Notes: a model not told the origin generated them from the letters alone. DNA of 64,000 bases from Cyanophora paradoxa CCMP329 (GCA_004431415.1 QPMI01000066.1:1-64000), one strand, 5' to 3'. Counted from the first letter of the stretch, positions 10,574 through 52,500 are shown. Program-made: numbers and translations.

Positions 10574-13500
10574 ATGGCGTCCCAGCTCAACGGCCCCGCA
10601 GACGACGCTCAAGGCGGGCCTCCGCGGCTCGCCGATCCGGCGCTTGCTGGCTACGCCCCTGCACCTCGCCGGGAGAGCACGCTGCCCCGTCGTAGCGACG
10701 CAACGCGCCCGAAGCAGGCGTTCGTGCCGCCCGCGACTATAGACGACAAACTGGGCATCCCGCCATATCGGGCCTTGTTCGTCTTGAAGCCACGCTCGTG
10801 GATCCGGATTCAATGCGCCAGACTGCTGCGCTCCCCGTGCGCAAGGCCCCCGCGTCGGGCTCAGGGTTCGCGGGTGACGCCGCCCGCAGACTCTACAGCA
10901 TCCTGAACTTGGCGGCCGTGACGATCGTGTGCGCAAACATCGCCTCGATGGGAGAAGGTCCGGTCTGGAACGGCCTTGAGATCGCTGTGGTGCGCTGCCG
11001 CTGCGCCGCACGCTGCGACCGCCCGTCGCCTTACCGGCCGCCTGCACGTGAGCGCAGACGGTGTACTTCACGATCGAGGTACCGCCTCTCGCCGCGCCGC
11101 TCCCGCCGCGCCGCCCCTGACCGGTTCGGCCCCCGTAGTGCATCGTCAAGATCCTGAAGCTCGGTGCGCCGTACCGTGCGGCTCCCTCACCGACTCCGGT
11201 CGAGCGGCGGCCGCTCGCGCAGGCTTCGTGCTACACAAGGGCAGTTACTTACGCAGCCCGTGGAATGTTCTCGAGCTCGTCGTCACCATCCTCGGTTGGC
11301 TCTCCCTCGTCGCCTCGGTACCCCACTCCCGGCCCCCGCTCGTCCCCGCCCGCCCCCGCCGGCCCGCCGACGCGCCCCCAGCTCAACAATTTCACTTCCC
11401 TCCGAACCCTCCGAGTCCTCCGCACTCTCAAGTCCATCTCGGCCCTCAAGAGTGCGACCCCCCCCCCCCCTCCCCCACCCCCGCGCGTACCCCCACGGCC
11501 GCACCTCACGCCCGCCGCCGCGCAGCCGTCCGCCTCTTCACCGATGCCGTCCTCGCCGCCATCCCCATGCTCCTCCAGGCGCGCCCCTGTACCCAGCCCG
11601 CCCCCGCCGCGCCACGCTCGGCCCCAGGCGCGAGCGCGTACCCCACGCGCAGTGCGGAATCCAGATCATCTTCTTCTTCGTACTATTCGGCATCGTGGGG
11701 ACGTCCGTGTTCTCCGCCGCGCTGCGGTTCCGGGCCGTGGACGCCCTGACAGGTACCCCCCACCCACCCCGCCCCCTTCGCTTCCCGCGGCCCCGGCGAG
11801 CGCCCAGCAGGCACGGTGCCGATGGGGCAAGACGTGGAGGCTCCGCTGTTCCTCTGCGGGGACCCGCTGCCTCCCGCGCGCAACCCGGGGCCCGGCCTCA
11901 TCTGCGTACCCTGGGACAACCCCTCCTACGGCTACACCAGGCGCCTTCCCTTCCCTTCCCGCGGCCGCTTCGTTCGCTTCGACGTTCTAACGAAAGCCGC
12001 GGACAGCTTCGACAACATCCTGTGGGTCTGGCTGCTGCTCTGGCAGTGCCTGACCATGTCCCAGTGGACGTGGTTCATGTGCGCGCGTCCCCCCGCCCCT
12101 CCCCCTGCCTGGACCCGGGGTACAGGACTAGACCGAGCCCGGGGTACAGGTACTGGACCTGGGATTCGATGGGCGCCGGCACCATCCTCTACTTCTGGGC
12201 GGTGCGCCGTTTTCCTTTAGAGGGGAAAAGGGGCCCCGCCGGGATTCGAGCCGGCGCCCGCCCGCTCAGGTGATCCTCTTCGGGTCGTTCGCGATCGTCA
12301 ACCTGACGCTGGCGGTCGTCAACGACACTTACGTCGGGCTCCTCGAGAAGGTCCGGGGGGGGGGGTACCGGCCCTTCCGGGGGGTACGTGGCGCTGAGAC
12401 GCCGGCGGCCGCCGCGCAGGAGAAGGACGTGGAGCCGGAGCCGCGGGATATAATCCTCTCACGTAGGGGATCCCAAGTCACCACCCGCGTGGGGCGGGTG
12501 CGCCCCTGCCCCCGCCCCCGCCCCCGCCCCCGCCCCCGGCCCCGCCCGCCTAACAGGTCTTCCTCTTTTTTTCCTGCTCTTCTGCTCCCCCCAGGCGATC
12601 CACGCGACGCACTTCTGGCTCTGGGCCCGCTGGAACGCCATGTCCAAGTGGGTCCGGGTCCGGTGCGCGCCTCGCTTCGCAGCAGAGCTGAGCGGAGCGG
12701 AGCAAAGCTGAGCGGAGCTGAGCCGAGCGGCGGGGCTGACGCCGAGGACCCCCGCGCAGGGCGCACAAGCCCCTTAAGGACCTGAAGGGCCCGCGGGCGC
12801 GCGTGGAGACGATGCTCGGCAGCTCGCCGTACCGCTTCGTCGTGGACGCCTCCACCTGGTTCGGGGTCATCCTCCTCGTGCGCCCCCCCCCCCCCCCCCC
12901 CCCCCTCGTCCACCACCCCCTACCCCTCTCTTATCTCTACCCTTCTCAGGTGTGCTACTACCCGGACATGCCGGAGGGGAGCCGGCACGCGGTGGAGTGG
13001 CTCAACGTCGCCTGCGTCGTCTTCTACGCCTTCGACGCCCTCCTCCGGGTGCGTGCGAAGCGGCGGGGCGGGGCGGGCCCAAACGGGGCGGGCCCAAATC
13101 ACCCCCTCATCACCCCCCTCGTCTCCCCCTCACGGGGCGGGGCGCCCCTCTCACCCCCTCATCACCCCCCTCATCCCCTGCGGCGGCGGGGGGGCGGGGG
13201 GGCGGCGGGGCGGCGGGGCGGGGCGGGGCTGGACTGCCCTCCCGGCCGAAGCGGGGCGGGCCCAAACGGGGCGGGGCCGGCCGGGGCGGGGCGCCCTTCC
13301 CAACCCCTCCCTTCTCATTCTCCCCCTAAACACCGGGCCTGCCTGCACCTCGATTGAGGGCGCCCCTCCTACCCCCTCCTCACCCCCCTCGCCCCCCTCG
13401 CCCTCCCTCCCCCCAGGTATACGCGCGGGGCATTCTGCGCTGCTACATCCACTCCATGTCCGACTCCATCGACGTCACTGTCGCCATCCTCGGCATCATA

Positions 13501-16500
13501 CAGGCGCGTGTCCCGGCTATCTGTCTCGCCCACCTCGCTTATCTAGCTTGCTTGCTCATCGGCGCAATGCTCAGGTCGGGATCAACCCGCCGCACGTGGC
13601 GGCCGCCGTGCGGGGGACCGCCCCGGGCCACTTCCTCTACCCCTTCCGCGTCTTCCGCCTCATCCGCATCGTCCGGTGCGGCCGCAATGCAATCTAAGAC
13701 ACTAAGAATCACAGCAAGGGACTATCGTAGTCCAACACCCGGCCCGCCCCCCCGCGTTTCGCGCCCGCCCTGCCCCGCCCCGCCCCCCGCCTGACGCCTC
13801 TGGGCAGCTACTGCCGCTTCGAGTCCCTTCGCGCCCTCTCCGTCGACGCCATCCGCTCCCTAAAGGTACCCCCCCTCTCTCCCCCCCCCCCCTTTACCGG
13901 CCCTCCTCATCCCTGCACCGCAGAGCATGGCGGGCTTCATCCCGACCCTCTTCGTCTACATCCTCATCTGCTCCCTCTTCGGCATGCAGCTCTTCGGGCG
14001 CGCCTCGGCCCCGCCCCGCCCCGCCCCTCACTAGTAGATTCGATCTTAGATTCTCTAAGAGAGCGCTCTTCGGGCGCGCCCCGCCTTCCGCGCCCCCGCC
14101 CCGCTGTTCTGTCTTGACTCTTGACCTTCCTCTGACCGCCGTTCAGGGGCGCTCTGCCGCCGGACCAGCGCGCCAACTTCGACAGCTTCTACAAGGGCGC
14201 CGTCCTCACCGTCTTTCGCCTCCTCACCCTCGACCAGGTGAGGCCCCGCCCCTCCACCCATACATTTCCATGCATTTCCATCTGTTTCCATCCGTTTCCA
14301 TCCGTTTCCATCTACTAGGCTCGGCTCTTCCCATCTATCTGTCCATTTTCATCCGTTTGCATCCGTTTATATCTATCCATCTACCCCGCCCCCCGGCCCT
14401 CTACCCCGCCCCTCGCCGCTCGGCCCGGCCCTCCTGACCCTTCCTCGCCAGTGGAATGACGTGATGTGGAGCGCGATGCGGGGCACGGGCAACCTCGCGA
14501 GCCCGCTGTACTTCATCGTCATCCAGGCCATCGGCAACTGTGCGCCCGCCCGCCCCGCCCCGCCCCGCCCCGCCCCGCAACGCACCGCTCCGCACCGCTC
14601 CGGCGTTGCTGAACGCGCTGAACGTCAGTCATCGTGCTGAACGGGCTCGTGGCGCTCCTGATCAACTCGATGTTCACGGACGAGACGCGGCAGAAGATGC
14701 AGCGCGAGCTCATGGCCCTCAAGAAGCGCCAGTCCCGCCTCGAGCGCGCCGCCAGCCGCGTCGTCATACGCTCCTTCGTGCGCGACCGACCCGAAGCGGC
14801 GCCCCGCCCCGTCTGACGCGCGGGGGGGCCGTCGGCGGCGCCGCAGAAAGCGGCGCGGAAGCTCGCGCGGACGGAGTCGTTCGAGGAGTTCGAGCGGCGG
14901 CGGCGGAGGATGGCGCGGAGGCTCTCGGCCTCGGCCATGGACGAGCTCATGGCGGCCGCCACCGGCGAGGGCGAGGAGGCCGAGGAGGAGGCGCCGAAGA
15001 AGCCCGTGCACCGCGGCTCGGTCTTCGCGCACCCGCTGGGGGTGTTCGGGGAGCCCCTCCTCGACAGCGACGAGGAGGAGGAGCGCGAGGAGGAGCGCCG
15101 CCGCGCCCGGCGCGCCGAGGCGCAGGGACGGCTCCCGGCGCCGGCCTCGGGGACGGACCTGGCGGGCATCGAGCTGCGGCTCCTGCCGCCGGCCGCCAGC
15201 GTCACCTCCGTCCAGCTCTCCGGCGAGCCGCCCCAAGGGTCCGCGGCCGGGGCCGGGGCCGGGGCCGGGGCCGGCACGCCCCCGGAGGGCGGCTACCGGC
15301 GCTTCCGGCCGGGCTCGATCTCGATCTCGGGCTCGGGCGCGGGCGCGGGCTCGGACGCCCGGCTCGCTGACCGGAGCGGCCCGCCGGCGCCGCCCACGCC
15401 GCCCTCGGGCCGCCTGCCGCAGTCCTCCTCGCTGCAGGTGCCGGCGGCGGCGCGGCCGCCGCGGGGCGTCATCCCGCTCTCGAGCAGCACGAACGGGTCG
15501 CGGCTGGCGAGCAGCGCGGGGGCCGACGGCGGCGTCTCCGTCTCCGTCATCCACTGGAGCAACAGCAGCGAGAACAACGACAGCGGGAGCTCCAACGCCG
15601 CTAGCGACGCGCCCCTAAAGCCGCACCGCGCGGGGCCCCCGCCCCCCGCCCCCGCCGTCCTCTTCCAGCCCGCCGACCCGGACGCCCCGCCCAAGCGCGT
15701 CCTGCCGGCCCCGCCCCCGCTGGAGCTGCCCAGCCCCCCGTCGTTCTCGGGAGGCGCGGCGGGGGCGGCGGGGGTCGCGGGCGCCGGCATGGTGAGCCCG
15801 GACGACAAGCTGTCGGAGGAGGAGAAGCGGAAGCGGAAGAAGATGATCGGGAACGCCGTGCGGGACGCCTTCGGGGGCGTGCGGGTCACGGCGGGGTACC
15901 ACAAGCCCCTCCAGGCGCCCGCCTACACGCCCCTCGTGCGGAAGAAGAGCTTCGACGACGCCGACTGGGACTACCGCAACTTCGAGGTGCGTGCGCCGGC
16001 GGGCGGGCGGGCGGGCGGGCGGGCGGGCGGCGCCTCCCGACCCGTTCGTCTCCGCCGCGGGGCCTTACTGTGCTGCCTTGCGCGCCGAAGAAATCGTCGC
16101 TGGTGAGCTGGCGGGCCGGCTGGTCGCTCTTCCTGTGGAGCCCGACGAACCGCGCCCGCATGGGCCTCCACGCCCTCGTCAAGCACCGCTACTTCGAGCG
16201 GTGCGTGCGAGCGAGCGAAGCCTTCCCTCGCTCGCTCGCGTCAGGGCGCAGCGGCGCCGGCTCACTTACGCCCCCCGCGCTCGCTTGCACCCCACCCCGC
16301 AGCCTGATCATCCTCATCATCATCGGGAGCTGCATCCTCCTCCTCCTCGACTACCCCAACTGCCCCTTCGCCGACGTGCGCCGCCCGCCCCGCCCCGCCC
16401 CGCCCCGCCCCTCCTCTCCCCGCCAAGAGGGAAGATTTTGGGCATGGAAGAAGGGAAGAAGAAGAGGAGCCTCCCTATCCGTCCTAACGCGGCGAGACCG

Positions 16501-19500
16501 GCGCAGAACGTGCGGTACGCCGACGCGGCCTTCACGTGCCTCTTCTGCATGGAGGCAATCATGAAGATCCTGGCGAGCCGGCCCCTCCCCTCTTATTCAC
16601 TCTTCTTCTCTGATCTTCTATATCTTCTGTATAGGCGATGGGGTTCGTGCTGGACCGGGGCTCGTACATGCGGGACCCGTGGAACTGGCTGGACTTGGCC
16701 ATAGCGGTCGTCTCCGCCTCGTCGCTGCCGGAGGTGGCCGAGGGGGGCTCCTCGGGCGGGCAGCGCGCCACCCGCGTCCTCCGCGTCTTCCGCGCCATGC
16801 GGCCCATCCGCCTCGTCCAGCGCTTCCGCGGCGTCCGCGTCGTCATCACATCCATCGTCAAGGCCCTACCCTACATCGGCCGCGTCTCCCTGTCCGTCCC
16901 TGTCACTCGCTTTCTCGCCTCGCCTCACCCTCGCCTCGCCCAGGCTCGTCTTCATCATGTGGGGCTTCTTCGCCGTGATGGGCATGCAGCTCTTCATGGG
17001 GCGCCTATCCTACTGCTCCGAGGTCACGCTGGATCAGGCCGACTGCGTCGGGCAGGCCACCGTCCAGGGCGGCGTGCGCCCCGCCCGCCCCCGCCGCCGC
17101 CGCCGGCCCTCCGCCGCCGCGCCCCGCCGCCGCCGGCCCGCACCGACGCCGCCGCCGCAGGCGCCGATCGAGCGGGAGTGGCGGAGCAACTGGGAGAAGT
17201 GCGCCGCCGCCGCCGCCGCCGCCGCCGCGCGGGGACCGCTGCTGACGGCGCCCCGCGCAGCTTCGACCACATCGGCAACGCGATGATGACCCTCTTCGAG
17301 ATGGCGACGCTGGAGAACTGGTACCCCCCCACTTCTCCCGGCGGCCCGCTCCGCGCCGCCCCGCCGGCTGAGCCGCCCGCCCCCGCGCAGGGTCTTCGTG
17401 ATGTACTCCGCGATGGACTCGACGGGGGTCACGACGGCCCCGCAGGTCCGCTCGCTCGTTTATTCTCAACGACGCGCGTGCGCAAGCAAGCGCATTTCGT
17501 GAATGCACAATTCAGATCGAGTCGAACGTGGCCGCCTCCGTCTTCTTCCTCCTCTTCATCATCTGCGGAGTCTACGTGCGCCCGTCCCCGCCCGACCACC
17601 CGCCTGCCCGCCCGCCCGCCCGCCCGCCTCCTGGTGGCGGCAACCCGGAGCTAGCTAGCTAGCTAGCTAGCTAGCTAGCTAGCTAGCTAGCTTCTCCTCG
17701 GGCTGGCTGACTCGGCCGCGCGCGCGCGCAGGCGGTGATGAACTGGTACATCTCGGTGGTCGTCATGGCCTTCACGCAGGCCCAGGTCCGTCCGACGCGT
17801 TTTCTTTCAATTGCTCCCTTCCCCGCCCGCGCCCCGCCCCACCGCCCCGCCCCGCCCGAGGAAGAAACTTAGCTACAGAAGCTTCAAGGAAGCTTTGACG
17901 AAGCCCCGCCCCACCTCACCGCCCGGCCCCGCAGGAGGAGCTCCGGGTGGAGCGGGACGCGAACGAGTCGCCGGACGCGCTCCACATCGACACGGACGAC
18001 CTCTCCAACGACCAGAAGCAGTGGGCCGAGGTCCGTCCGTCCGAGGGCCGAGGGCTGGTTGCATTGTACGGCGTCAGAAGAAGAGGGCGGGGCAGGAGAA
18101 GCAGCCTTGGACGAAGCCGGCTCGGGCCAACTGACCCGCGGACTCTGCCGCCGCGCGCAGATGCTGCAGCTGGCGATGGACCGGCCCCTCCGGCCCCGCA
18201 TCCGCAAGCCCCAGGCGGCCTGGCGCAAGGCCGCCGACGCCGTCGTCCGCCACAAGTGGTCCGCGCGCCTCCTAAACACTAATCTAATCTAATACTCATA
18301 CTATTACAAATACTAATCAAATCGAATCGAATCCAATCTAAGTGGTAACTAGAACCGAGCCCGATGTACAACTCAAAAACCTAGAGACGAATCAAACCTT
18401 ATCTATCTATCGATCGCCGAGCCTAGACCCGAGCCCGATGAACCCGAGCCCAACCCACCCTCTGCCCCATTCCAATCCATCGATCGCCGCTCACGGCCTC
18501 GCCCCCCCCCCCCCCCCCCCCCCCCGCCCCCGCGCGGCCAGGTTCGAGCCGGCGCTGGTGGTGCTGATCCTGGTCGACGCTGCCGTCCTCATGTCCAACA
18601 GCGCCGACCAGAGCCGCCGCACCGACGAGGCCCTCACCGTCCGCCCCGCCCCGCCCCGCCCCGCCCCGCTCTAACGAAACTGAAGACGTCGTACCTTGCT
18701 AAACTAGAACAGCCGCCCTTCCTCCCTTTCCGATCCGATGCGATCCGACTTGCCTTCGCGCAGTGGACGAGCTTCTGCCTCTCGCTGCTCTTCCTGCTGG
18801 AGGCCCTCCTCAAGATCGCCGCCTTCGGCCTCAAGAACTTCGTTCGCGACCGCTGGCGGTCCGCTCCTCCCCGCTCGCCCGCCCGCTCGCTCGCTCGCCA
18901 AAGACCGACGGCCCCGCCGGCGCCTGCAGGGTGTTCGACCTGGTGATCGTGGTGGTGACGACCGTCGGCTCGATTGTCGACGTCATCTTCCTCTACAACG
19001 TCCAGGAGGGCGGCAACACGGTCCGCCCCGCCCCGCTTGGCTAGGCTAGGCGTGGGGGGAGGAGTAGGCGGGGCGAGGCTAGAGGCTGCAGGGGCCGGGT
19101 AGGCTAGGCGACAGGGGGCCCCGCCCGCCGGCCGGCCCACGGGGGCCGCGGGGCGATAGACGAGACGGGCCAGGCTGGGCCGGCGCCGCCGCCGCCGCTG
19201 AGCGAGCGGCCCCGGCCCCCTCTCAGGTGACGGCGATCCGGGCGGTGCGGGTGCTGCGCGTGGCCCGCGTCTTCCGCCTCTTCTCCCGCACAAAGGTGCG
19301 TCCCCCAGGGGCGTGCGGGGTGCGCCTACTCCGGCTACCTACCTATCTAACTCTCCTCCTCGTCCTCCTCCTCCTCGCCCTCCCCATGGCAGTCCCTCGT
19401 GCTGCTCTTCGACACGGTCTCGGACTGCCTGCCGCGCCTCGGCGAGGTCTGCGCGACCTTCGCCCTCGTCTGGTTCGTCTTCATCATCATCGGCGTCCAG

Positions 19501-22049
19501 GTCCGCCCGCCCGCCCGCCCGCCCGCCCCTCTTTCGTTCGTTTCTTCAGCTTGCGCTAGCGATCGCTGGCTATCTAGGCGCCTCTCTATCTATCTATCTA
19601 TCTATCGCCACGCCCGCCGCCTCCGCCGCCGCCCCCGCTCTCCGTCCGCGGCGTCACCGTGCGGCGCTCGCGCGCTCGCAGGCCTTCGGCACGCGCTTCT
19701 TCGCGGGGAACATCGACCTCCACGGTGCGCCCCGCCCCGCGCGCCCGGCGCCCCGCCAGCGCCCCGCGCCATCTCACCCCCCTTCTCACCTACCTTCGTT
19801 CGCAGTGAACTTCCAGCACGCCGGCTTCGCGGCGACGACGCTCTTCTCCTTCATCACCAACGAGCGCTGGAACGAGATCATGTGGTCTATCACCGTGCGC
19901 CCGTACCCCCCGCGGGCCCCGCCCCGCCCCGCCCCGCCCCGCTCGCTCGCTCTCCTCTCTCCCGCCCCGCCCCGCCCCGCTCGTTCTCCTCTCTCCCGCC
20001 CGGCTCCGCGGCGCGTTGGAATATCACTAGATTCGTGAGAACTCCTTCTCCTGTCAGGCTGGCCAGGAGCTATGAATCTCCGCCCCGCCGCGTGCTCGTC
20101 GCCGACTAGAACCACTGCGAGCATAGCCAAGAACAGTCCCTAAGGCTGGCTAAGGAACTATTAATCTAGAATCACTATAAAAATAGCCAAGTGCAGCAGT
20201 TCGCGGCATGCTTGCTCGGCTGAGCGCCGCGGCAGCGCCCGAACCCGGGGGACTGCCCTGAGGGCCCCGCGGCGTGCGACTACCCCGCCACGAACCTCTT
20301 CTTCGTCCTCTGGATGTGGTTCGGCCAGGTGGGCATCTACCCCCGTCCCCTTCCCCCCCCCTCCCCCCCCCCCCGACTTGGCTCGGCCCGCCCCCGCGCC
20401 CATCAGATTATCTTCATCAACCTGGTCGTTGCCGTCATGGTCCGTGCCCGACCCGCCCCGCCCCGCCCCGCCCCGCCCCGCCCGTGGCCCGCCTGACGCG
20501 CGGGGCGCGTCCGGCAGATCGACGCCTTCTCCGTGAACGTGCGCGAGCGCTACTACCTCGTCCGCAAGAAGTGCGCCCGCCCCGCCGCCCCGCCCCGCCC
20601 CGCCCCGCCGACCGGGCGACCCGCGGGCGTCGGTACGCGCCGAGCGAGCGCGCTTAGAGCGGTCCGAGCGAGCGCGCCTAGAAGAGGGGTAGTACTAGAT
20701 GGGCGGCCCGCCTCCCCCGCCCCGCCGGCCCGCCCCGCCCCGCCCGCCCGGCCTCGCCGCTGATCCCCGCGCCCGTGCCGCCGGCAGCGACATCGCGAGG
20801 TACCTGACGACGTGGGAGATGTACGACCCCAAGGCCACCGCCTCATCGTCGCCCAGGTCCGGCCGTGGAGGAGGGGGGTCGTCCACGAGGGATGGGGCGT
20901 CTAGCGAGCTGCGTTTGGGGGGGGGGGGGGGGGGGGGGGGGGGGTCCGTGGAGAGGGCCGCCCGCGGGGACGTCTAGCGGGCGCCGCGACCCCAAGGCCA
21001 CCGGCCTCCTCGTCGCCCGTGGTCCGTCCGTGGAGGGGGAGGGCGTGGGGAGGGGTCGCCCGAGGGGGCCTCCAGCGAGCCGCCGCCCGCCTCTGACCGC
21101 GCCGCCGCCGCCGCCGTCCAGACGAACCTCGTCCGCCTTTTTAGCGAGCTTTCTAGCCAGCCAGCCAGCGCTGGAGGGGGCGTCCAGCGAGCCGCCGCCC
21201 GCCTCTGACCGCGCCGCCGCCGCCGCCCAGACGGACCTCGTCCGCCTCCTCCGCGCGATCGGCAAGCCCCTCGGCCTCCCGCCCAACGCTTCCCGCGTCG
21301 AGGTCGCCCGGTCCGTCCCGCCCCCTCCCCTCCGCTCCGCTCCCCTCCGCTCCGCCTGCCGCCCCTTCCTCATCTATGTTAGGCTGCTGGGGAGCCTGCG
21401 GATCCCGCTGCTGCACGGCGTCCACGTGCACTACCGCGTGCTGCTGCACGCCCTCATCGACCGGGCCTACATGCTCGCCCTCGTGCCCCTCGTGCCCGAC
21501 GTCGAGCTGGACACGCGCCTCCACTACACCCGCAAGTGCCCCGTGCTCTCCGCTTACATGCCGCCCGGCAACGACACGCTGCACGAGGCGCCCACCGTGG
21601 CCGAGCTCTTCGCCGCCCTGTCCTTGCAGGCCCGCGCCCGCGGCATCCTCGACCGCAAGCGCGTCGCCGCCCTCCGCGTCGGTGGCGGCCAGAGCCGCCA
21701 CGGCCCGGGCACCTCCAAGCCGCACACGGGCATCCGCACGCCGCCGCCCGGCAGCCTCGTCCGCAAGGCCGGCGCCGTCAGCGCCGCCGCCGAGGGGGAG
21801 GAGGAGCGGGCCGTCGTGCGCAGCCCTATCTCTCTCCTCCCACCCGTGCCCGCCCCGCTCGCCCTGACGCACGCACAGCCCGAGGACTACGAGAGCGATC
21901 CGGGGAACAACGAGCACGTCGTGCAGACGCTGATCAAGGGGACCGTCGAGACGGCCAAAGAGGCGACGTCGCCCTCGCGCACCCTCGCCGGCATGTTCTC
22001 CGCGGGCGTCCCCAAGGCCAAGCCCTCCAACCTCTTCGGCCTGATCTAG
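10574..22049 (+). CDS. Four-domain voltage-gated cation channel alpha subunit (Cav/Nav/NALCN superfamily), many exons
   Basis: Four 6-TM repeats. S4 segments: LRTLRVLRTLKSI, PFRVFRLIRIVR, RVLRVFRAMRPIRLVQR, IRAVRVLRVARVFRLF. P-loops: QCLTMSQW, RLLTLDQW, EMATLENW, FITNERW. S2-S3 motifs: YLRSPWN, YMRDPWNWLD, RDRWRVFDLVIV. C-terminal EF-like WEMYDPKATG..LLRAIGKPLG and IQ-like LQARARGILDRKR. Stop TAG at 22049. Confidence 0.95.
17650..17692. repeat. (GCTA)n microsatellite in a channel intron
   Basis: About 10 perfect gcta units. Confidence 0.9.
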
Positions 22050-43234: not shown

Positions 43235-46223
43235 CTATTGGAAGAGGAGGGCGGGATCGAAATCAAAGTCGGCGAGGGCGAGGGCCGGGCTGAAGTCCCG
43301 CGGGGGTACGCCGGAGTTGCGGGCCGGGGTACCGAGTGCCTCCTCGGCGTCGTCGTCGCCGAGCGAGAGGAACGGGCGCTCGTGCAGCGACTCCTTGCAC
43401 GCGAGCGTCGCCGCGAGCTCCTTGGCGAACTGGCCGGCCGGCGGGTCAGATGGGCGGGAGGGGGGAGGAAGCGGAAGGGAGGGGGGTACCTCCTCGCAGA
43501 CGACGACGCCCTCGACGACGCGGCGGCGCGCGTCGTCGGCGCCGGGCGCGGAGAGCTCCTCCACGGCTGCGCTCACGGGCGAGGCGCGCCCCGAGGGGCC
43601 CCGCCGCGTGGCCGCCGCCGCCGCCCGCGCGTCCGCCGGCTCGTGCTCGTCCACCTGGGCGGGGGGGGTACGGGATGAGAAATCGAACAATAAGAAAGGA
43701 GGGGGTACTGCGCGAACGTTGAGGAGGCGGCGGGCGGCGCGGACGAAGCGGTCGAAGTCGGCGATCTTGTTCCCGCGCGAGCGACCCTCCTCGCAGACCT
43801 TGTACCCCCCACTCCGGGTCAGAGGCCGGCCGGGCACGGACCTGGGTACGCGCGCGCGGACCTGGGCGAGGACGCGGGCGAGGGTACGGGCCTCGCCGCC
43901 GGGGAAGGAGTGGCCGAGGGGGGCGAAGAGAAAGGCCTGGGCGAGGGGGTGCGGGCAGGCGGAGAGGCGGGCGAGGGCGGAGGTGAGGAGGAGGTTGACG
44001 GGGAGGCTGTTGTCAAGGGCCCGCTCCAGGCGGGAGAGGAGGGCGGAGACGAGGGGGCCCGGGCTCAGCGGCGGCAGGCTCTCCTCGGCCGCCGCCTCCT
44101 CCGCCGCCCCCGACGGCTCCTCGGGCTCGTCCCGCCAGTGGGCGAAGGACTGCAGCGCAATGGCCGCCGCCCGGTGCGCGTCGACCATGTACGAGCGGTA
44201 CCCCTCCTCCAGGTCCCCGCTCGCCGTGATACCCCCCTCGAACTGGGCCAGGAAGCTGCGGGCGGGGAGCCGGCGGTCGTCGTCAGGCCGGCGCCGAGGG
44301 CGGGGGTACGGAGTTAAGGGGGCGCACGCGCTGACTCGGGCGCGGAGCCACGCGGGGATGTCGTCCTGTGGGGGGCCGGCGAGTCCTGGGGTGGCGGGGG
44401 TGGCGGAGAGGGGGAGGACGGGGCCGGGGGAGGGCGGCACGGGGCCGGAGGACGGGGCGGGGGTCGATGGCGCCTCGGCGTGCGCCTCGGCCTCGGGGGG
44501 AGGGGGCGGGAGGGAGGCGAGGAGCGGGGCGCGGTGCGTGCGGAGGTGGCGGAGGAGGAGCGGCTCCAGGACGGCCTGGGAGTGGAGGGCGAGAAGGGCG
44601 TCGAAGAGCTTCAGCGTGGCGACGCTCAGCTCCTCTGAGACCGAGTCCACGCGGGAGACGAGGGCGGGGAAGACGGGGCCGGCCTCGTCCAGGAGGAAGG
44701 AGACGAGGCAGGCCTGGAGGGGCGGGCACGAGAGGGCGGAGAGGAGCGCGCGGGCGTAGTCGGTGGCAGCCACGGCGGCCGCCTCGCTGGTCTGCAGGAG
44801 CGCCGGCTGGACGTCCTTGGTGAGGAATCCCTCCTTCAGCTTCTCGCAGAGCTGGTGGACCACCTCCTACAAATAGCTCAGAAGAAGAAGAAGAAAAAGG
44901 AGGGGGAGGGGAGGGAGAGAGGGAGGGCGGGGCGCACGGGCGGGGCGGCGCGGCCGACGTTGTTGCAGAAGCGGAGGCGGTCCGTGAAGACGCGGAAGGA
45001 CTGCTCGTCCAGCGGCGTGGGCGCCTCTGCGGAGCGTGGGAGCGTCTCGTGCGCCTCGGCCACCCACGAGATCTGCCCCGCGGTCTAAGGAGAGGAAAGG
45101 ACGGAACGAGGGAAGGATTCCGCACGATGTCAGAGCAGAAATGCGTGCCGCGGACGACGAAGCGGGCGAGGAGCGGCTCATCGATGTGGAGGAGGGAGAT
45201 GAGGCCCGCGCGGCACTTCTCGCCGTACGCGTCCGTCATGCGCATGTACCGCAGCAGCGCCGCGAACGTCAGGTACTGCGGGTCGCCCTGCGCGCGCCCC
45301 GCCGCCGGCGGCGGTCGGTCAGGTCGGGAGCGACGGCAGCGGGCCGGCGCGAGCGGCCGGGGCGCACTCCCTTGACGCCGTCTTCGACGAGGAAGAAGTT
45401 GAGGAGGAAAGGATTCTGCTGCATCTTCCCGCACAGGACGCACAGAAGCTGCGGCGCGCGGGATTCGCTTCTCGGGGAGCGCGGGATGGGACGGAGAAGG
45501 AAGGAAAACAAACCTCGATCATCTCCATGTGCGCTTCGCCCTTGCCCTGCAGGTAGTACTTGCGCACGAGCTCGCAGACGGGGACGTGCACGGCCAGCAT
45601 GGGCAGGAGGGGCTGCTTGATCTTCTTCAGGAGCACTGCGGGCAGCCGGGGCCTCAGGGGCGCGGGGCAGGGTCCCGAAGCGCAGCATCGGACCCGTCAT
45701 GAAGCGGATGACGACCGCCTGCATCCCGGGCGGCCGCTGCGGCGAGGGGTCAAGCCTCCAGCAGATGAAGCGAGCGCACGGCGGCCGGGAACGGCGGCCC
45801 GGCGCAGTCGGCGCACGTTCACGATTGCCAAGGCAGCGAGCTGGTCGAGGATCTTCTGCGAGAGCAGGTACTCGACGCAGGGGCCCGTGTCCGACATACG
45901 GCCCGCGTCCTCCCGGCGCAGCAGTTCGTGCATCTCAGACAGGCTGCGTTCGATGCCTGAAGCCTCGAGCAGCGCGGGATTCGCTGCAGCGGCGTTGGCC
46001 TCATCGGGCGCGAGCCGAAGAGCGAGCGGGCGCGCGTACCGAGCGGGTCTTCCGTCGGGGACGAGACTTCCACTGAAGAGTAGAATGAGCGGATCTCCTC
46101 CCAGCGCTGAGCGAACACGTCGACATCTCTGCGGTCGGGCTGCTTGACTGTCAGCAGCGTCGCGGCATGGGCCACGAGCTGCGACGCCCCTCCCGATGCC
46201 CGCGCTAGCAGGCGCTCCCACAT
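43235..46223 (-). CDS. FHIP/FAM160 (RAI16-like, FTS-Hook interacting) family protein, multi-exon
   Basis: GPCVEYLLSQKILDQL; PPGMQAVVIRF; QPLLP..VHVPV; PFLLNFF; LDNSLPVNLLLTSALARL..PHP; VVVCEE/FAKELAA. Stop at 43235. Confidence 0.85.
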
Positions 46224-49500: not shown

Positions 49501-52500
49501 ACTGCTGGGTTATTGCGATGTGCGCGTCTGTGTTGACGCCCGCCGCAGAGCCGGCCAGCGTGTGCGGAGACGGCGCCATCCAGGGCTCCGAGGCCTGCGA
49601 TCTCGGCGCCGCCAACGGCCAGCCGGGCGCCCTCTGCACATCCAACTGCGAGGTCATTCAGCAGATCTGTGGAGACGGCGCCATCCAGGGCTCCGAGGCC
49701 TGCGATCTGGGCGCCGCCAACGGCCAGCCGGGCGCCCTCTGCACATCCAACTGCGAGATCATCCAGCAGATCTGTGGAGACGGCGCCATCCAGGGCTCCG
49801 AGGCGTGCGATCTGGGCGCCGCCAACGGCCAGCCGGGCGCCCTCTGCACATCCAACTGCGAGATCATCCAGCAGATCTGTGGAGACGGCGCCATCCAGGG
49901 CTCCGAGGCGTGCGATCTGGGCGCCGCCAACGGCCAGCCGGGCGCCCTCTGCACATCCAACTGCGAGGTCATTCAGCAGATCTGTGGAGACGGCGCCATC
50001 CAGGGCTCCGAGGCCTGCGATCTCGGCGCCGCCAACGGCCAGCCGGGCGCCCTCTGCACATCCAACTGCGAGATCATCCAGCAGATCTGTGGAGACGGCG
50101 CCATCCAGGGCTCCGAGGCGTGCGATCTGGGCGCCGCCAACGGCCAGCCGGGCGCCCTCTGCACATCCAACTGCGAGATCATCCAGCAGATCTGTGGAGA
50201 CGGCGCCATCCAGGGCTCCGAGGCGTGCGATCTGGGCGCCGCCAACGGCCAGCCGGGCGCGCTGTGCACTGCCAACTGCGAGGTTATTCAGCAGATCTGT
50301 GGAGACGGCGCCATCCAGGGCTCCGAGGCCTGCGATCTGGGCGCCGCCAACGGCCAGCCGGGCGCCCTCTGCACATCCAACTGCGAGGTCGTTCAGCAGA
50401 TCTGTGGAGACGGCGCCATCCAGGGCTCCGAGGCGTGCGATCTGGGCGCCGCCAACGGCCAGCCGGGCGCCCTCTGCACATCCAACTGCGAGATCATCCA
50501 GCAGATCTGTGGAGACGGCGCCATCCAGGGCTCCGAGGCGTGCGATCTGGGCGCCGCCAACGGCCAGCCGGGCGCGCTGTGCACGGCCAACTGCGAGGTC
50601 ATTCAGCAGATCTGCGGCAACGGGTCCATCGGTCCGCCCTCTCCACCATCGTTCCCGCTTTATAAGCCGCTGGTCTGTCCTCTCCAATCTCTGACCCGTT
50701 TCTCGGCAGAGGGAACGGAGAAGTGCGATCTGGGCGCCGCCAACGGCCAGCCGGGCGCGCTGTGCACTGCCAACTGCGAGGTTATTCAGCAGATCTGCGG
50801 CAACGGGTCCATCGGTCCGCCCTCCCTGCCATCATCGCGCTTTATAAGCCGCCGGTCTTTCCTCTCCAGTCTCTGACCCGTTTCTCTGCAGAGGGGACGG
50901 AGAAGTGCGATCTCGGCGCCGCCAACGGCCAGCCGGGCGCGCTGTGCACGGCCAACTGCGAGGTTATTCAGCAGATCTGCGGCAACGGGTCCATTGGTCC
51001 GCCCTCTCCGCCGTCTCTTCGCTTTTAAAGCCCCCGGTCTTTCCTCTCCAGTCTCTGACCCGTTTCTCCGCAGAGGGAACGGAGAAGTGCGATCTCGGCG
51101 CCGCCAACGGCCAGCCGGGCGCGCTGTGCACGGCCAACTGCGAGGTCATTCAGCAGATCTGCGGCAACGGGTCCATCGGTCCGCCCTCTCCGCCATCTCT
51201 TCGCTTTATAAGCCGCCGGTCTTTCCTCTCCAGTCTCTGACCCGTTTCTCTGCAGAGGGAACGGAGAAGTGCGATCTCGGCGCCGCCAACGGCCAGCCGG
51301 GCGCGCTGTGCACGGCCAACTGCGAGGTTATTCAGCAGATCTGCGGCAACGGGTCCATCGGTCCGCCCTCTCCGCCGTCTCTTCGCTTTTAAAGCCGCCG
51401 GTCTTTCCTCTCCAGTCTCTGACCCGTTTCTCCGCAGAGGGAACGGAGAAGTGCGATCTCGGCGCCGCCAACGGCCAGCCGGGCGCGCTGTGCACGGCCA
51501 ACTGCGAAGTCATTCAGCAGATCTGCGGCAACGGGTCCATCGGTCCGCCCTCTCCGCCATCTCTTCGCTTTATAAGCCGCCGCTTATTCCTCTCCAGTCT
51601 CTGACCCGTTTCTCTGCAGAGGGAACGGAGAAGTGCGATCTCGGCGCCGCCAACGGCCAGCCGGGCGCGCTGTGCACGGCCAACTGCGAGGTTATTCAGC
51701 AGATCTGCGGCAACGGGTCCATCGGTCCGCCCTCTCCGCCGTCTCTTCGCTTTATAAGCCGCCGGTCATTCCTCTCCAGTCTCTGACCGCTTTCTCCGCA
51801 GAGGGAACGGAGAAGTGCGATCTCGGCGCCGCCAACGGCCAGCCGGGCGCGCTGTGCACGGCCAACTGCGAGGTTATTCAGCAGATCTGCGGCAACGGGT
51901 CCATCGGTCCGCACTCATTTCCGCCTTGACTGCCGCTAGTCGTTCGTCGACGATCTGTAACTTTTCGCTTCTGCACCAGAGGGGACGGAGGGCTGCGATC
52001 TGGGCGCCGCCAACGGCCAGCCGGGCGCGCTCTGCACGGCCAACTGCCAGCCCGTCCAGCAGACGTGCGGCAACGGCGTCCTCGAGGGCACCGAGCTGTG
52101 CGACGCGGGCTCGTGGAACGGCCTCCCGGACTCGACTTGCTCCCGCGCCTGCACGCCCCAGACGCCCGGTCCGCCTTCGCTTCCCCCTTCGCTTCTTCCG
52201 TTCGTTCGTTCGTCTTCCAACGGAAGCGTTCCAACTGCAGCCCCGCCGCCGCCCGCGGCTGTCTGCGGGAACGGCATGGTCGAGGCCGGGGAGGCGAGTG
52301 CCGCTTTGGTTCCCCCGTCCTTCCCTTCGCCCGCCTCGTCTGACCGCTCTGCTTCGCAGGCCTGCGACGCCGGGGTGCAGAATGGGCAGCCGTTCTCCAC
52401 GTGCTCCGCAACCTGCACGGTCGTCCCGCCGGGTCCGCCCTAATTTCCGGATTTCCGCTTGCCGTAATCTGCAATCTCTGACTTTGTCGCCTCGGATGCA

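Follow-up and report, generated by a model that had tools for sequence, protein, structure and literature searches.

An apparently intact gene for a four-domain voltage-gated cation channel with a Ser/Asp/Glu/Glu filter ring in the glaucophyte Cyanophora paradoxa

The 64,000-nucleotide (nt) stretch of Cyanophora paradoxa CCMP329 DNA analysed here (GCA_004431415.1, QPMI01000066.1:1-64000), referred to below as the window, carries on its + strand, between positions 10574 and 22049, what is apparently one intact nuclear gene of this alga, a glaucophyte and not a green alga. Its predicted product is a four-domain voltage-gated cation channel, in which the filter residues of domains I to IV form a Ser/Asp/Glu/Glu (S/D/E/E) ring. 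This ring had been proposed in an earlier note on the same DNA, and its presence within one four-domain voltage-gated channel was confirmed by the reading frames, the splices and the alignments.

The gene and its predicted protein

Between 10574 and 22049, the + strand consists of many short open segments with short GC-rich spacers between them, and the GC content of the window is high (0.58-0.76). The exon model was made by reading the three frames by hand against the DNA, and its joins are predicted splices. Built by coordinates, the model comprises 47 exons at 10574-20856 (median 87 nt), which encode 1,716 residues with zero stops; a further 3-4 exons are predicted for the C-terminus. The 46 introns (median 78 nt) are of the GT-AG type in 41 cases and of the GC-AG type in 5, with GTGCGC and GTCCGC as the commonest donors.

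For database searches we used single exons and two public gene models that overlap the locus (g22448 and g22450, described below), and the joined model was used locally for translation, phmmer, MAFFT and trees. The Pfam Ion_trans profile matched domain I with 151.6 bits and domain III with 200.9 bits, and domain IV more weakly. The spliced domain I was matched to the solved structures of Cav2.2, Cav2.1, Cav2.3, Nav1.5, Nav1.8 and Cav3 at E = 1e-57 to 1e-35. When the predicted splices are followed, each pore module finds its match in the corresponding domain of four-domain homologues, which places the repeats in the order I to IV. The regular spacing of Arg and Lys that the earlier note had described in all four S4 helices was recovered, and the positive charges in register number approximately 5 in domain I, 5 in domain II, 6 in domain III and 5 in domain IV. 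From the end of S6 in domain III to the start of S1 in domain IV, the linker is ~60-66 residues long, with the helix ends judged by eye; the short III-IV linker of this channel family has about 53-57 residues (PMC6259924). As predicted from the DNA, all parts of a voltage-gated cation channel are present and undamaged. The C-terminus, for which EF-like and IQ-like segments had been suggested, shows a weak resemblance to such modules. Searches of Pfam and of PDB sequences returned no match for it, but in a set of 198 proteins the exons at 21231-21815 align to the region that follows domain IV in four-domain channels of other protists (E = 2e-8 to 1e-4). Most protist channels are without a conserved IQ motif (PMC6259924).

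Two public models cover parts of the gene. The model tig00000254_g22450.t1 (g22450; EukProt Cyanophora paradoxa, 831 residues) was recovered as a 100% match to the domain III S3-S5 exon, which served as the query of a profile-free search of 1.84 billion representatives. This model spans 14464-18289 and corresponds to exons 22-36 of the hand-built model. Its start is an internal Met within the domain II pore loop; at 18259 it misses the splice and reads through into the intron, where it meets its stop at 18289. The model tig00000254_g22448.t1 (g22448; 577 residues, 10574-13354) was found by a search for words taken from the S5 exon of domain I. Over residues 1-476 it is identical to exons 1-16 of the hand-built model, with agreement on two GC-AG introns as well as on the pore loop of domain I. 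Its tail is formed by 101 codons read into the 368-nt intron at 13049, past domain II S2. Both public models therefore end in the same way, at an unrecognised donor with readthrough into an intron. The deposited annotation cuts one channel gene into at least three, and probably four, models. Two independent readings of the splice pattern agree, which lends good support to the predicted exon structure but is not transcript evidence. The practical result is one of curation: counts of ion channels in C. paradoxa would miss or miscount this channel of ~2,000 residues.

The junction between exons 47 and 48 (20856-21231) offers dozens of canonical in-frame splice paths because frame 2 is open throughout. 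Exon-end/intron segments are duplicated in tandem in this part of the gene (20825-20870 and 20988-21035; 21066-21140 and 21176-21250). It also contains a G27 homopolymer (run at about 20912-20945), and the two copies of a DPKAT... segment differ by one frame-shifting base. The C-terminal exons continue in frame 2 up to the TAG codon. The features of the gene are collected in Table 1.

Table 1. Predicted features of the channel gene, in positions of the window
Feature	Position	Strand	Remarks
Whole gene, four-domain voltage-gated cation channel	10574..22049	+	ATG 10574, TAG 22047-22049; ~50 exons; ~1,950-2,000 residues; predicted splices
Exons 1-16: N-terminus, domain I, I-II linker, domain II S1-S2	10574..13048	+	Residues 1-476 of g22448; Ion_trans 151.6 bits
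Domain I S4 exon	11382..11451	+	R,R,R,K,-,K, every third position
Domain I P-loop exon (...FDNILWVWLLLWQCLTMSQWTWF.)	12007..12078	+	Filter Ser TCC 12059-12061
Domain II S4 exon	13575..13675	+	Five Arg in register
Domain II P-loop exon, first half, end ...LTLDQ	14147..14237	+	Filter Asp GAC 14232-14234
Domain II P-loop exon, second half (WNDVMWSAM...)	14452..14539	+	Start of g22450 inside, ATG 14464
Large exon, low-complexity II-III linker	14847..15986	+	
Domain III S3-S4-S5 exon	16635..16891	+	Six Arg in register; used as query against the representatives
Domain III P-loop exon (...MATLEN + TG of W codon)	17261..17320	+	Filter Glu GAG 17313-17315
Last III-IV linker exon	18161..18258	+	Donor GTCCGC 18259, acceptor 18541/18542 (283-nt intron), then domain IV S1
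Domain IV S4 exon	19227..19295	+	Five Arg in register
Domain IV P-loop exon (...FSFITNERWNEIMWSIT)	19806..19894	+	Filter Glu GAG 19862-19864, then Arg
C-terminal domain start (..DIARYLTTWEMYDPKAT..), then stretch with several possible splicings	20788..21230	+	Tandem duplicated segments, G27 run, many in-frame GT-AG options
C-terminal exons 21231-21310, 21383-21815, 21879-22046, and stop	21231..22049	+	Frame 2

The introns have some features of their own. In many of them, a GTGCGC or GTCCGC start leads directly into a (CCCCG)n tract, for example at 14540, 16376, 18639, 19021, 19725, 19895 and 20440. Allowing up to 1 mismatch, we counted 20 occurrences of GTSCGCCCCGCCCCG in the window, where 0.38 would be expected, and some of them lie in other genes; this pattern could represent a shared intron family or a microsatellite beside the splice site. 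The GC-AG donors (11579, 11941, 13504, 13998 and 16573), three of which are also used by the public models, account for 11% of the introns (5/46), well above the usual eukaryotic share. A 15-nt string that lies at the donor of exon 20 (CTCTTCGGGCGCGCC, 13990-14004) is repeated 76 nt downstream in the same intron (14066-14080) and looks like an insertion footprint of the target-site-duplication type. Microsatellites of the (GCTA)n and (CTAT)n types lie in introns at 17644-17692 and 19583-19606. The neighbouring genes are unrelated to the channel and encode a RAI16-like/DUF5917 protein (43238-44863, - strand) and a DUF4215 repeat protein (49518-50873, + strand).

The filter ring and its register

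The four pore loops (P-loops) were found in the frames, and with the filter codons TCC, GAC, GAG and GAG, that the earlier note had assigned to them. Three of its four P-loop strings are literally present in the DNA; the domain II string is split, with its Gln and Trp joined across the intron at 14238-14451. The Trp codon of domain III is itself split by an intron (17321-17390). The loops read T-M-S-Q-W, T-L-D-Q-W, T-L-E-N-W and T-N-E-R-W, with Thr two positions before and Trp two positions after the filter residue in 4/4 domains. An alternative domain I pore exon was considered and ruled out: because the introns flanking the P-loop exon are only 66 and 71 nt long, no second copy fits between the exons.

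The register of the domain I Ser was established with human channels. The best structures were those of the human Cav2.2/Cav2.1 alpha-1 subunits (7mix_A), and the alignment with the spliced domain I, taken from g22448, extends over S2 to S6 (E = 9e-57). The alignment includes the turret (W-D-N-P-S-Y-G-Y-T-S-F-D-N against W-P-G-P-N-F-G-I-T-N-F-D-N) and the P-loop, where cltmSqwtwfmy is aligned on citmEgwtdily of Cav2.2 and Ser falls exactly at the filter Glu of domain I. The same filter register for Ser was obtained when the domain I exon alone was aligned with Cav3.3. The four filter columns are occupied by E or D in 130, 134, 133 and 130 of the 146 alignment rows. As had been pointed out before, TCC is distant from the acidic codons, with two changes needed to reach GAC and three to reach GAA or GAG.

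The residues around the ring were also compared with those of other channels. The eight positions on either side of the domain I Ser contain no acidic residue, and Ser is followed by Gln at a position where 105/125 representatives have Gly. In the D-Q-W sequence of domain II, Gln stands where animal Ca2+ channels carry Asp. In domain IV, Glu is directly followed by Arg, a residue that is not among the eight commonest at this position in the representatives.

The ring of the gene is neither the E/E/E/E of Cav1/Cav2, with the additional Asp in domain II, nor the E/E/D/D of Cav3, nor the D/E/K/A or D/E/E/A of Nav1/Nav2. It is also not the E/E/K/E, E/K/E/E or N/E/E/E of NALCN/Cch1, and the S4 charges are intact rather than depleted. 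In contrast to the gene, Cav2.2/Cav2.1 have the EEEE ring, the neighbouring Asp in domain II and C-terminal modules that are recognisable by Pfam, and the gene lies outside the Cav1/2-like clade in both trees described below.

Relatives and the variety of protist rings

The filter rings of the best 150 representatives from a local phmmer search were E/E/E/E in 71 cases, E/D/E/E in 11, E/E/D/D in 5, and Nav-like or other in the remainder. S/D/E/E was present in 0 of these 150 and is absent from the motif lists in PMC6259924 and PMC5824947. A domain I Ser was also found among the matches in Gonium (S/E/S/E) and Symbiodinium (S/D/S/D). A great variety of protist filter motifs, with E/E/E/E dominant, was described by Pozdnyakov et al. 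2018 (PMC5824947), including T/E/N/D and D/D/D/D in Chlamydomonas and S/S/K/E in Phytophthora; neither glaucophytes nor Porphyridium were found in the supplement of this survey. The rings T/D/E/E, SESE, RSDD, RADD and TEND are given for non-animal channels in the list that Fux et al. 2018 (PMC6259924) take from Verret et al. 2010. The channels with T/D/E/E, S/E/S/E, R/S/D/D and T/E/N/D resemble the gene in the plan of four repeats of six transmembrane helices (4x6TM) with charged S4, and in having a small hydroxyl or neutral residue in place of the domain I carboxylate. The listed T/D/E/E differs from S/D/E/E at a single position, with Thr for Ser. Electrophysiology of these variant non-animal rings is not reported in PMC6259924 or PMC5824947.

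Two characterised types of channel offer further comparison. Nav2 of invertebrates and choanoflagellates (D/E/E/A) resembles the gene in combining three carboxylates with one small neutral ring residue, but this residue is located in domain IV of Nav2 and in domain I of the Cyanophora gene. DEEA pores accommodate Na+, K+ and Ca2+, and Nav2 is Ca2+-permeable or non-selective (PMC6259924). The CAV2 channel of Chlamydomonas reinhardtii, a flagellar voltage-gated Ca2+ channel and the only characterised algal member (PMC5824947), is, like the gene, an algal four-domain channel of a biflagellate cell, but its ring is EEEE.

The best non-self relatives are ~30-42% identical and come from Micromonas, Ostreococcus, Prasinoderma, Pedinophyceae, diplonemids, Andalucia, Diphylleia and Porphyridium. 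In the representative search, where the best non-self match reached 42%, no orthologue outside Cyanophora was found, with the limit that 50% clustering and length windows could hide glaucophyte fragments or a close paralogue of >50% identity. A word search with the domain III region of g22450 detected no close relative (identity 32% or less), and a metagenome scan with domain I returned only relatives at 37%. A word search with 11822-12079, which covers the domain I P-loop, gave no match with a query that included 22 intron-translated residues. Within the clustered representatives, the word searches and the metagenomes, no S-D-E-E orthologue of the kind sought by the earlier note was found.

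Phylogenetic trees were constructed with FastTree (1,188 columns) and with IQ-TREE (LG+G4, 43 rows). Clades in these trees were labelled by filter motifs and by a small number of named rows, and the set contained no NALCN or Cch1 sequences. In both trees the gene falls outside the Cav1/2-like, Cav3-like and Nav-like clades, and the DEEA/DEKA-like sequences are grouped in a clade of their own, for which local support is maximal. The sister group is unstable because the two programs place the gene differently: FastTree groups it with Porphyridium (A/E/S/D) and Diphylleia (local support 97), and IQ-TREE puts it beside an Ostreococcus-like group (SH-like approximate likelihood ratio, SH-aLRT, 94). 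The idea of a clade of archaeplastids that share a neutral residue in domain I was set aside as unproven, as IQ-TREE had placed the gene elsewhere. The Porphyridium sequence, KAA8495059.1 of the red alga Porphyridium purpureum (2,442 residues), is a four-domain channel with an A/E/S/D ring; red algae are named among the groups without 4x6TM channels (PMC6259924).

These results do not sustain the suggestion that the filter lies outside the known variety and defines an algal channel class: T/D/E/E, SESE and similar rings are already listed, no orthologue was found in the clustered, word and metagenome searches, and the position in the trees is unstable. S/D/E/E is a new combination inside the known spread of protist rings, and not a new kind. 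The gene is a new member of the known four-domain channel family, with a mildly unusual pore.

Proposed function and alternative explanations

We consider it probable (about 0.75) that the gene encodes a four-domain channel which belongs to the Cav/Nav superfamily, derives from an old lineage of protists separate from the Cav1/2, Cav3 and Nav clades of animals, and has a Ca2+-permeable pore of reduced carboxylate content. Depolarisation would move the S4 helices and open a pore with three carboxylates instead of four. This pore would have no neighbouring Asp in domain II, Gln in place of Gly in domain I and Arg beside the Glu of domain IV. Ca2+ would still pass, but it would be bound more loosely, and monovalent ions would be discriminated against less, than in an EEEE channel. 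Weaker Ca2+ binding and more monovalent flux are expected because the ring has three carboxylates, the domain II Asp is absent and domain IV carries Arg. In principle, such a pore would be closer to the three-carboxylate DEEA ring of Nav2. In Ca2+ channels, the EEEE ring is the only high-affinity site for Ca2+ (PMC2151654), and a Cav3 can become a Na+ channel when the Asp beside its filter is neutralised (PMC10120453). The altered Ca2+/Na+ selectivity put forward in the earlier note may be regarded as a reasonable inference from the predicted pore. By analogy with Chlamydomonas CAV2, and purely by inference, the channel might participate in excitability or in flagellar responses of this biflagellate.

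Several points weigh against this interpretation. Selectivity cannot be read from the ring alone, since residues outside the ring matter according to the literature. No orthologue was found that could show conservation of the domain I Ser, in clustered searches that could hide fragments. The terminal branch of the gene is about twice as long as the median in both trees (1.1-1.4 vs 0.6-0.7), which fits either a relaxed or a changed constraint. The 1-nt difference between the segment copies near exons 47-48 may reflect a real lesion or an indel introduced during assembly; the latter may apply because the C. paradoxa assembly is PacBio-based with Illumina correction (PMC6704402). Several splice paths could apply at the junction from exon 47 to 48, and the choice among them is not fixed by the sequence. 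The public models, in turn, are not cDNAs but predictions by BRAKER1/AUGUSTUS, trained with RNA sequencing (RNA-seq) data, in a genome whose genes average 9.2 short introns (PMC6704402).

The condition of the locus bears on two other explanations. If the gene were an unexpressed or decaying pseudogene copy, its long terminal branch, together with the tandem duplications and the possible 1-nt indel in the C-terminal exon region, would be readily understood. However, ~5.1 kilobases of coding sequence in 47 small exons contain no stop or frameshift, every splice site is intact, and all S4 charges as well as the Thr and Trp that flank the filter residues are kept in four domains. Canonical in-frame paths also exist through the uncertain C-terminal stretch, and BRAKER1 called models over the locus using RNA-seq, so that decay appears quite improbable. 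It is scarcely credible that the public annotation is right and that the locus holds several separate shorter genes instead of one four-domain gene. It is true that g22448 (577 residues) and g22450 (831 residues) were deposited apart, and their numbering leaves room for one more model. Yet g22448 runs past domain II S2 only by translating 101 codons of a 368-nt intron, and g22450 begins inside the domain II pore loop and ends inside the intron at 18259. Neither of them is a functional unit, and canonical splices join all pieces in frame. The genome paper itself describes such intron-rich gene structures as problematic for predictors based on hidden Markov models, and the resulting models as needing manual curation (PMC6704402).

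A further explanation accepts the single channel gene but regards the Ser as functionally silent, with the Asp/Glu/Glu of domains II-IV sufficient for a highly Ca2+-selective channel. Mutagenesis of Cav1.2, by Yang in 1993 and Ellinor in 1995, reportedly found a smaller contribution from the Glu of domain I than from that of domain III, which would favour a silent Ser. The four residues of the EEEE ring are not equivalent (PMC2151654), and NEEE and EDEE rings are counted among the pores that resemble calcium-selective ones (PMC6259924). In domain I of the Cyanophora gene, however, two consecutive residues are changed (E to S and G to Q), domain II is without the neighbouring Asp and domain IV has Arg beside its Glu. 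Because these deviations in domains I, II and IV act together, the negative charge at the pore mouth is lowered well beyond the effect of a single conservative change. We therefore regard a silent Ser as rather unlikely, and favour the Ca2+-permeable pore of reduced carboxylate content and lower discrimination.

More tentatively, and with some doubt, it may be supposed that glaucophytes carry a four-domain channel family of their own. In such a family, the domain I carboxylate would have been lost early and Ser kept across paralogues, with a selectivity not found in animal channels (e.g., Na+/K+-permeable or non-selective). If true, nature would have carried out an experiment on the EEEE ring within one of the three primary lineages of algae. 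Provided that the Ser is conserved and alters selectivity, natural variants of the four-glutamate Ca2+ site would be available in Cyanophora for direct comparison with S-to-E revertants, and glaucophytes would join the picture of the evolution of excitability in primary algae.

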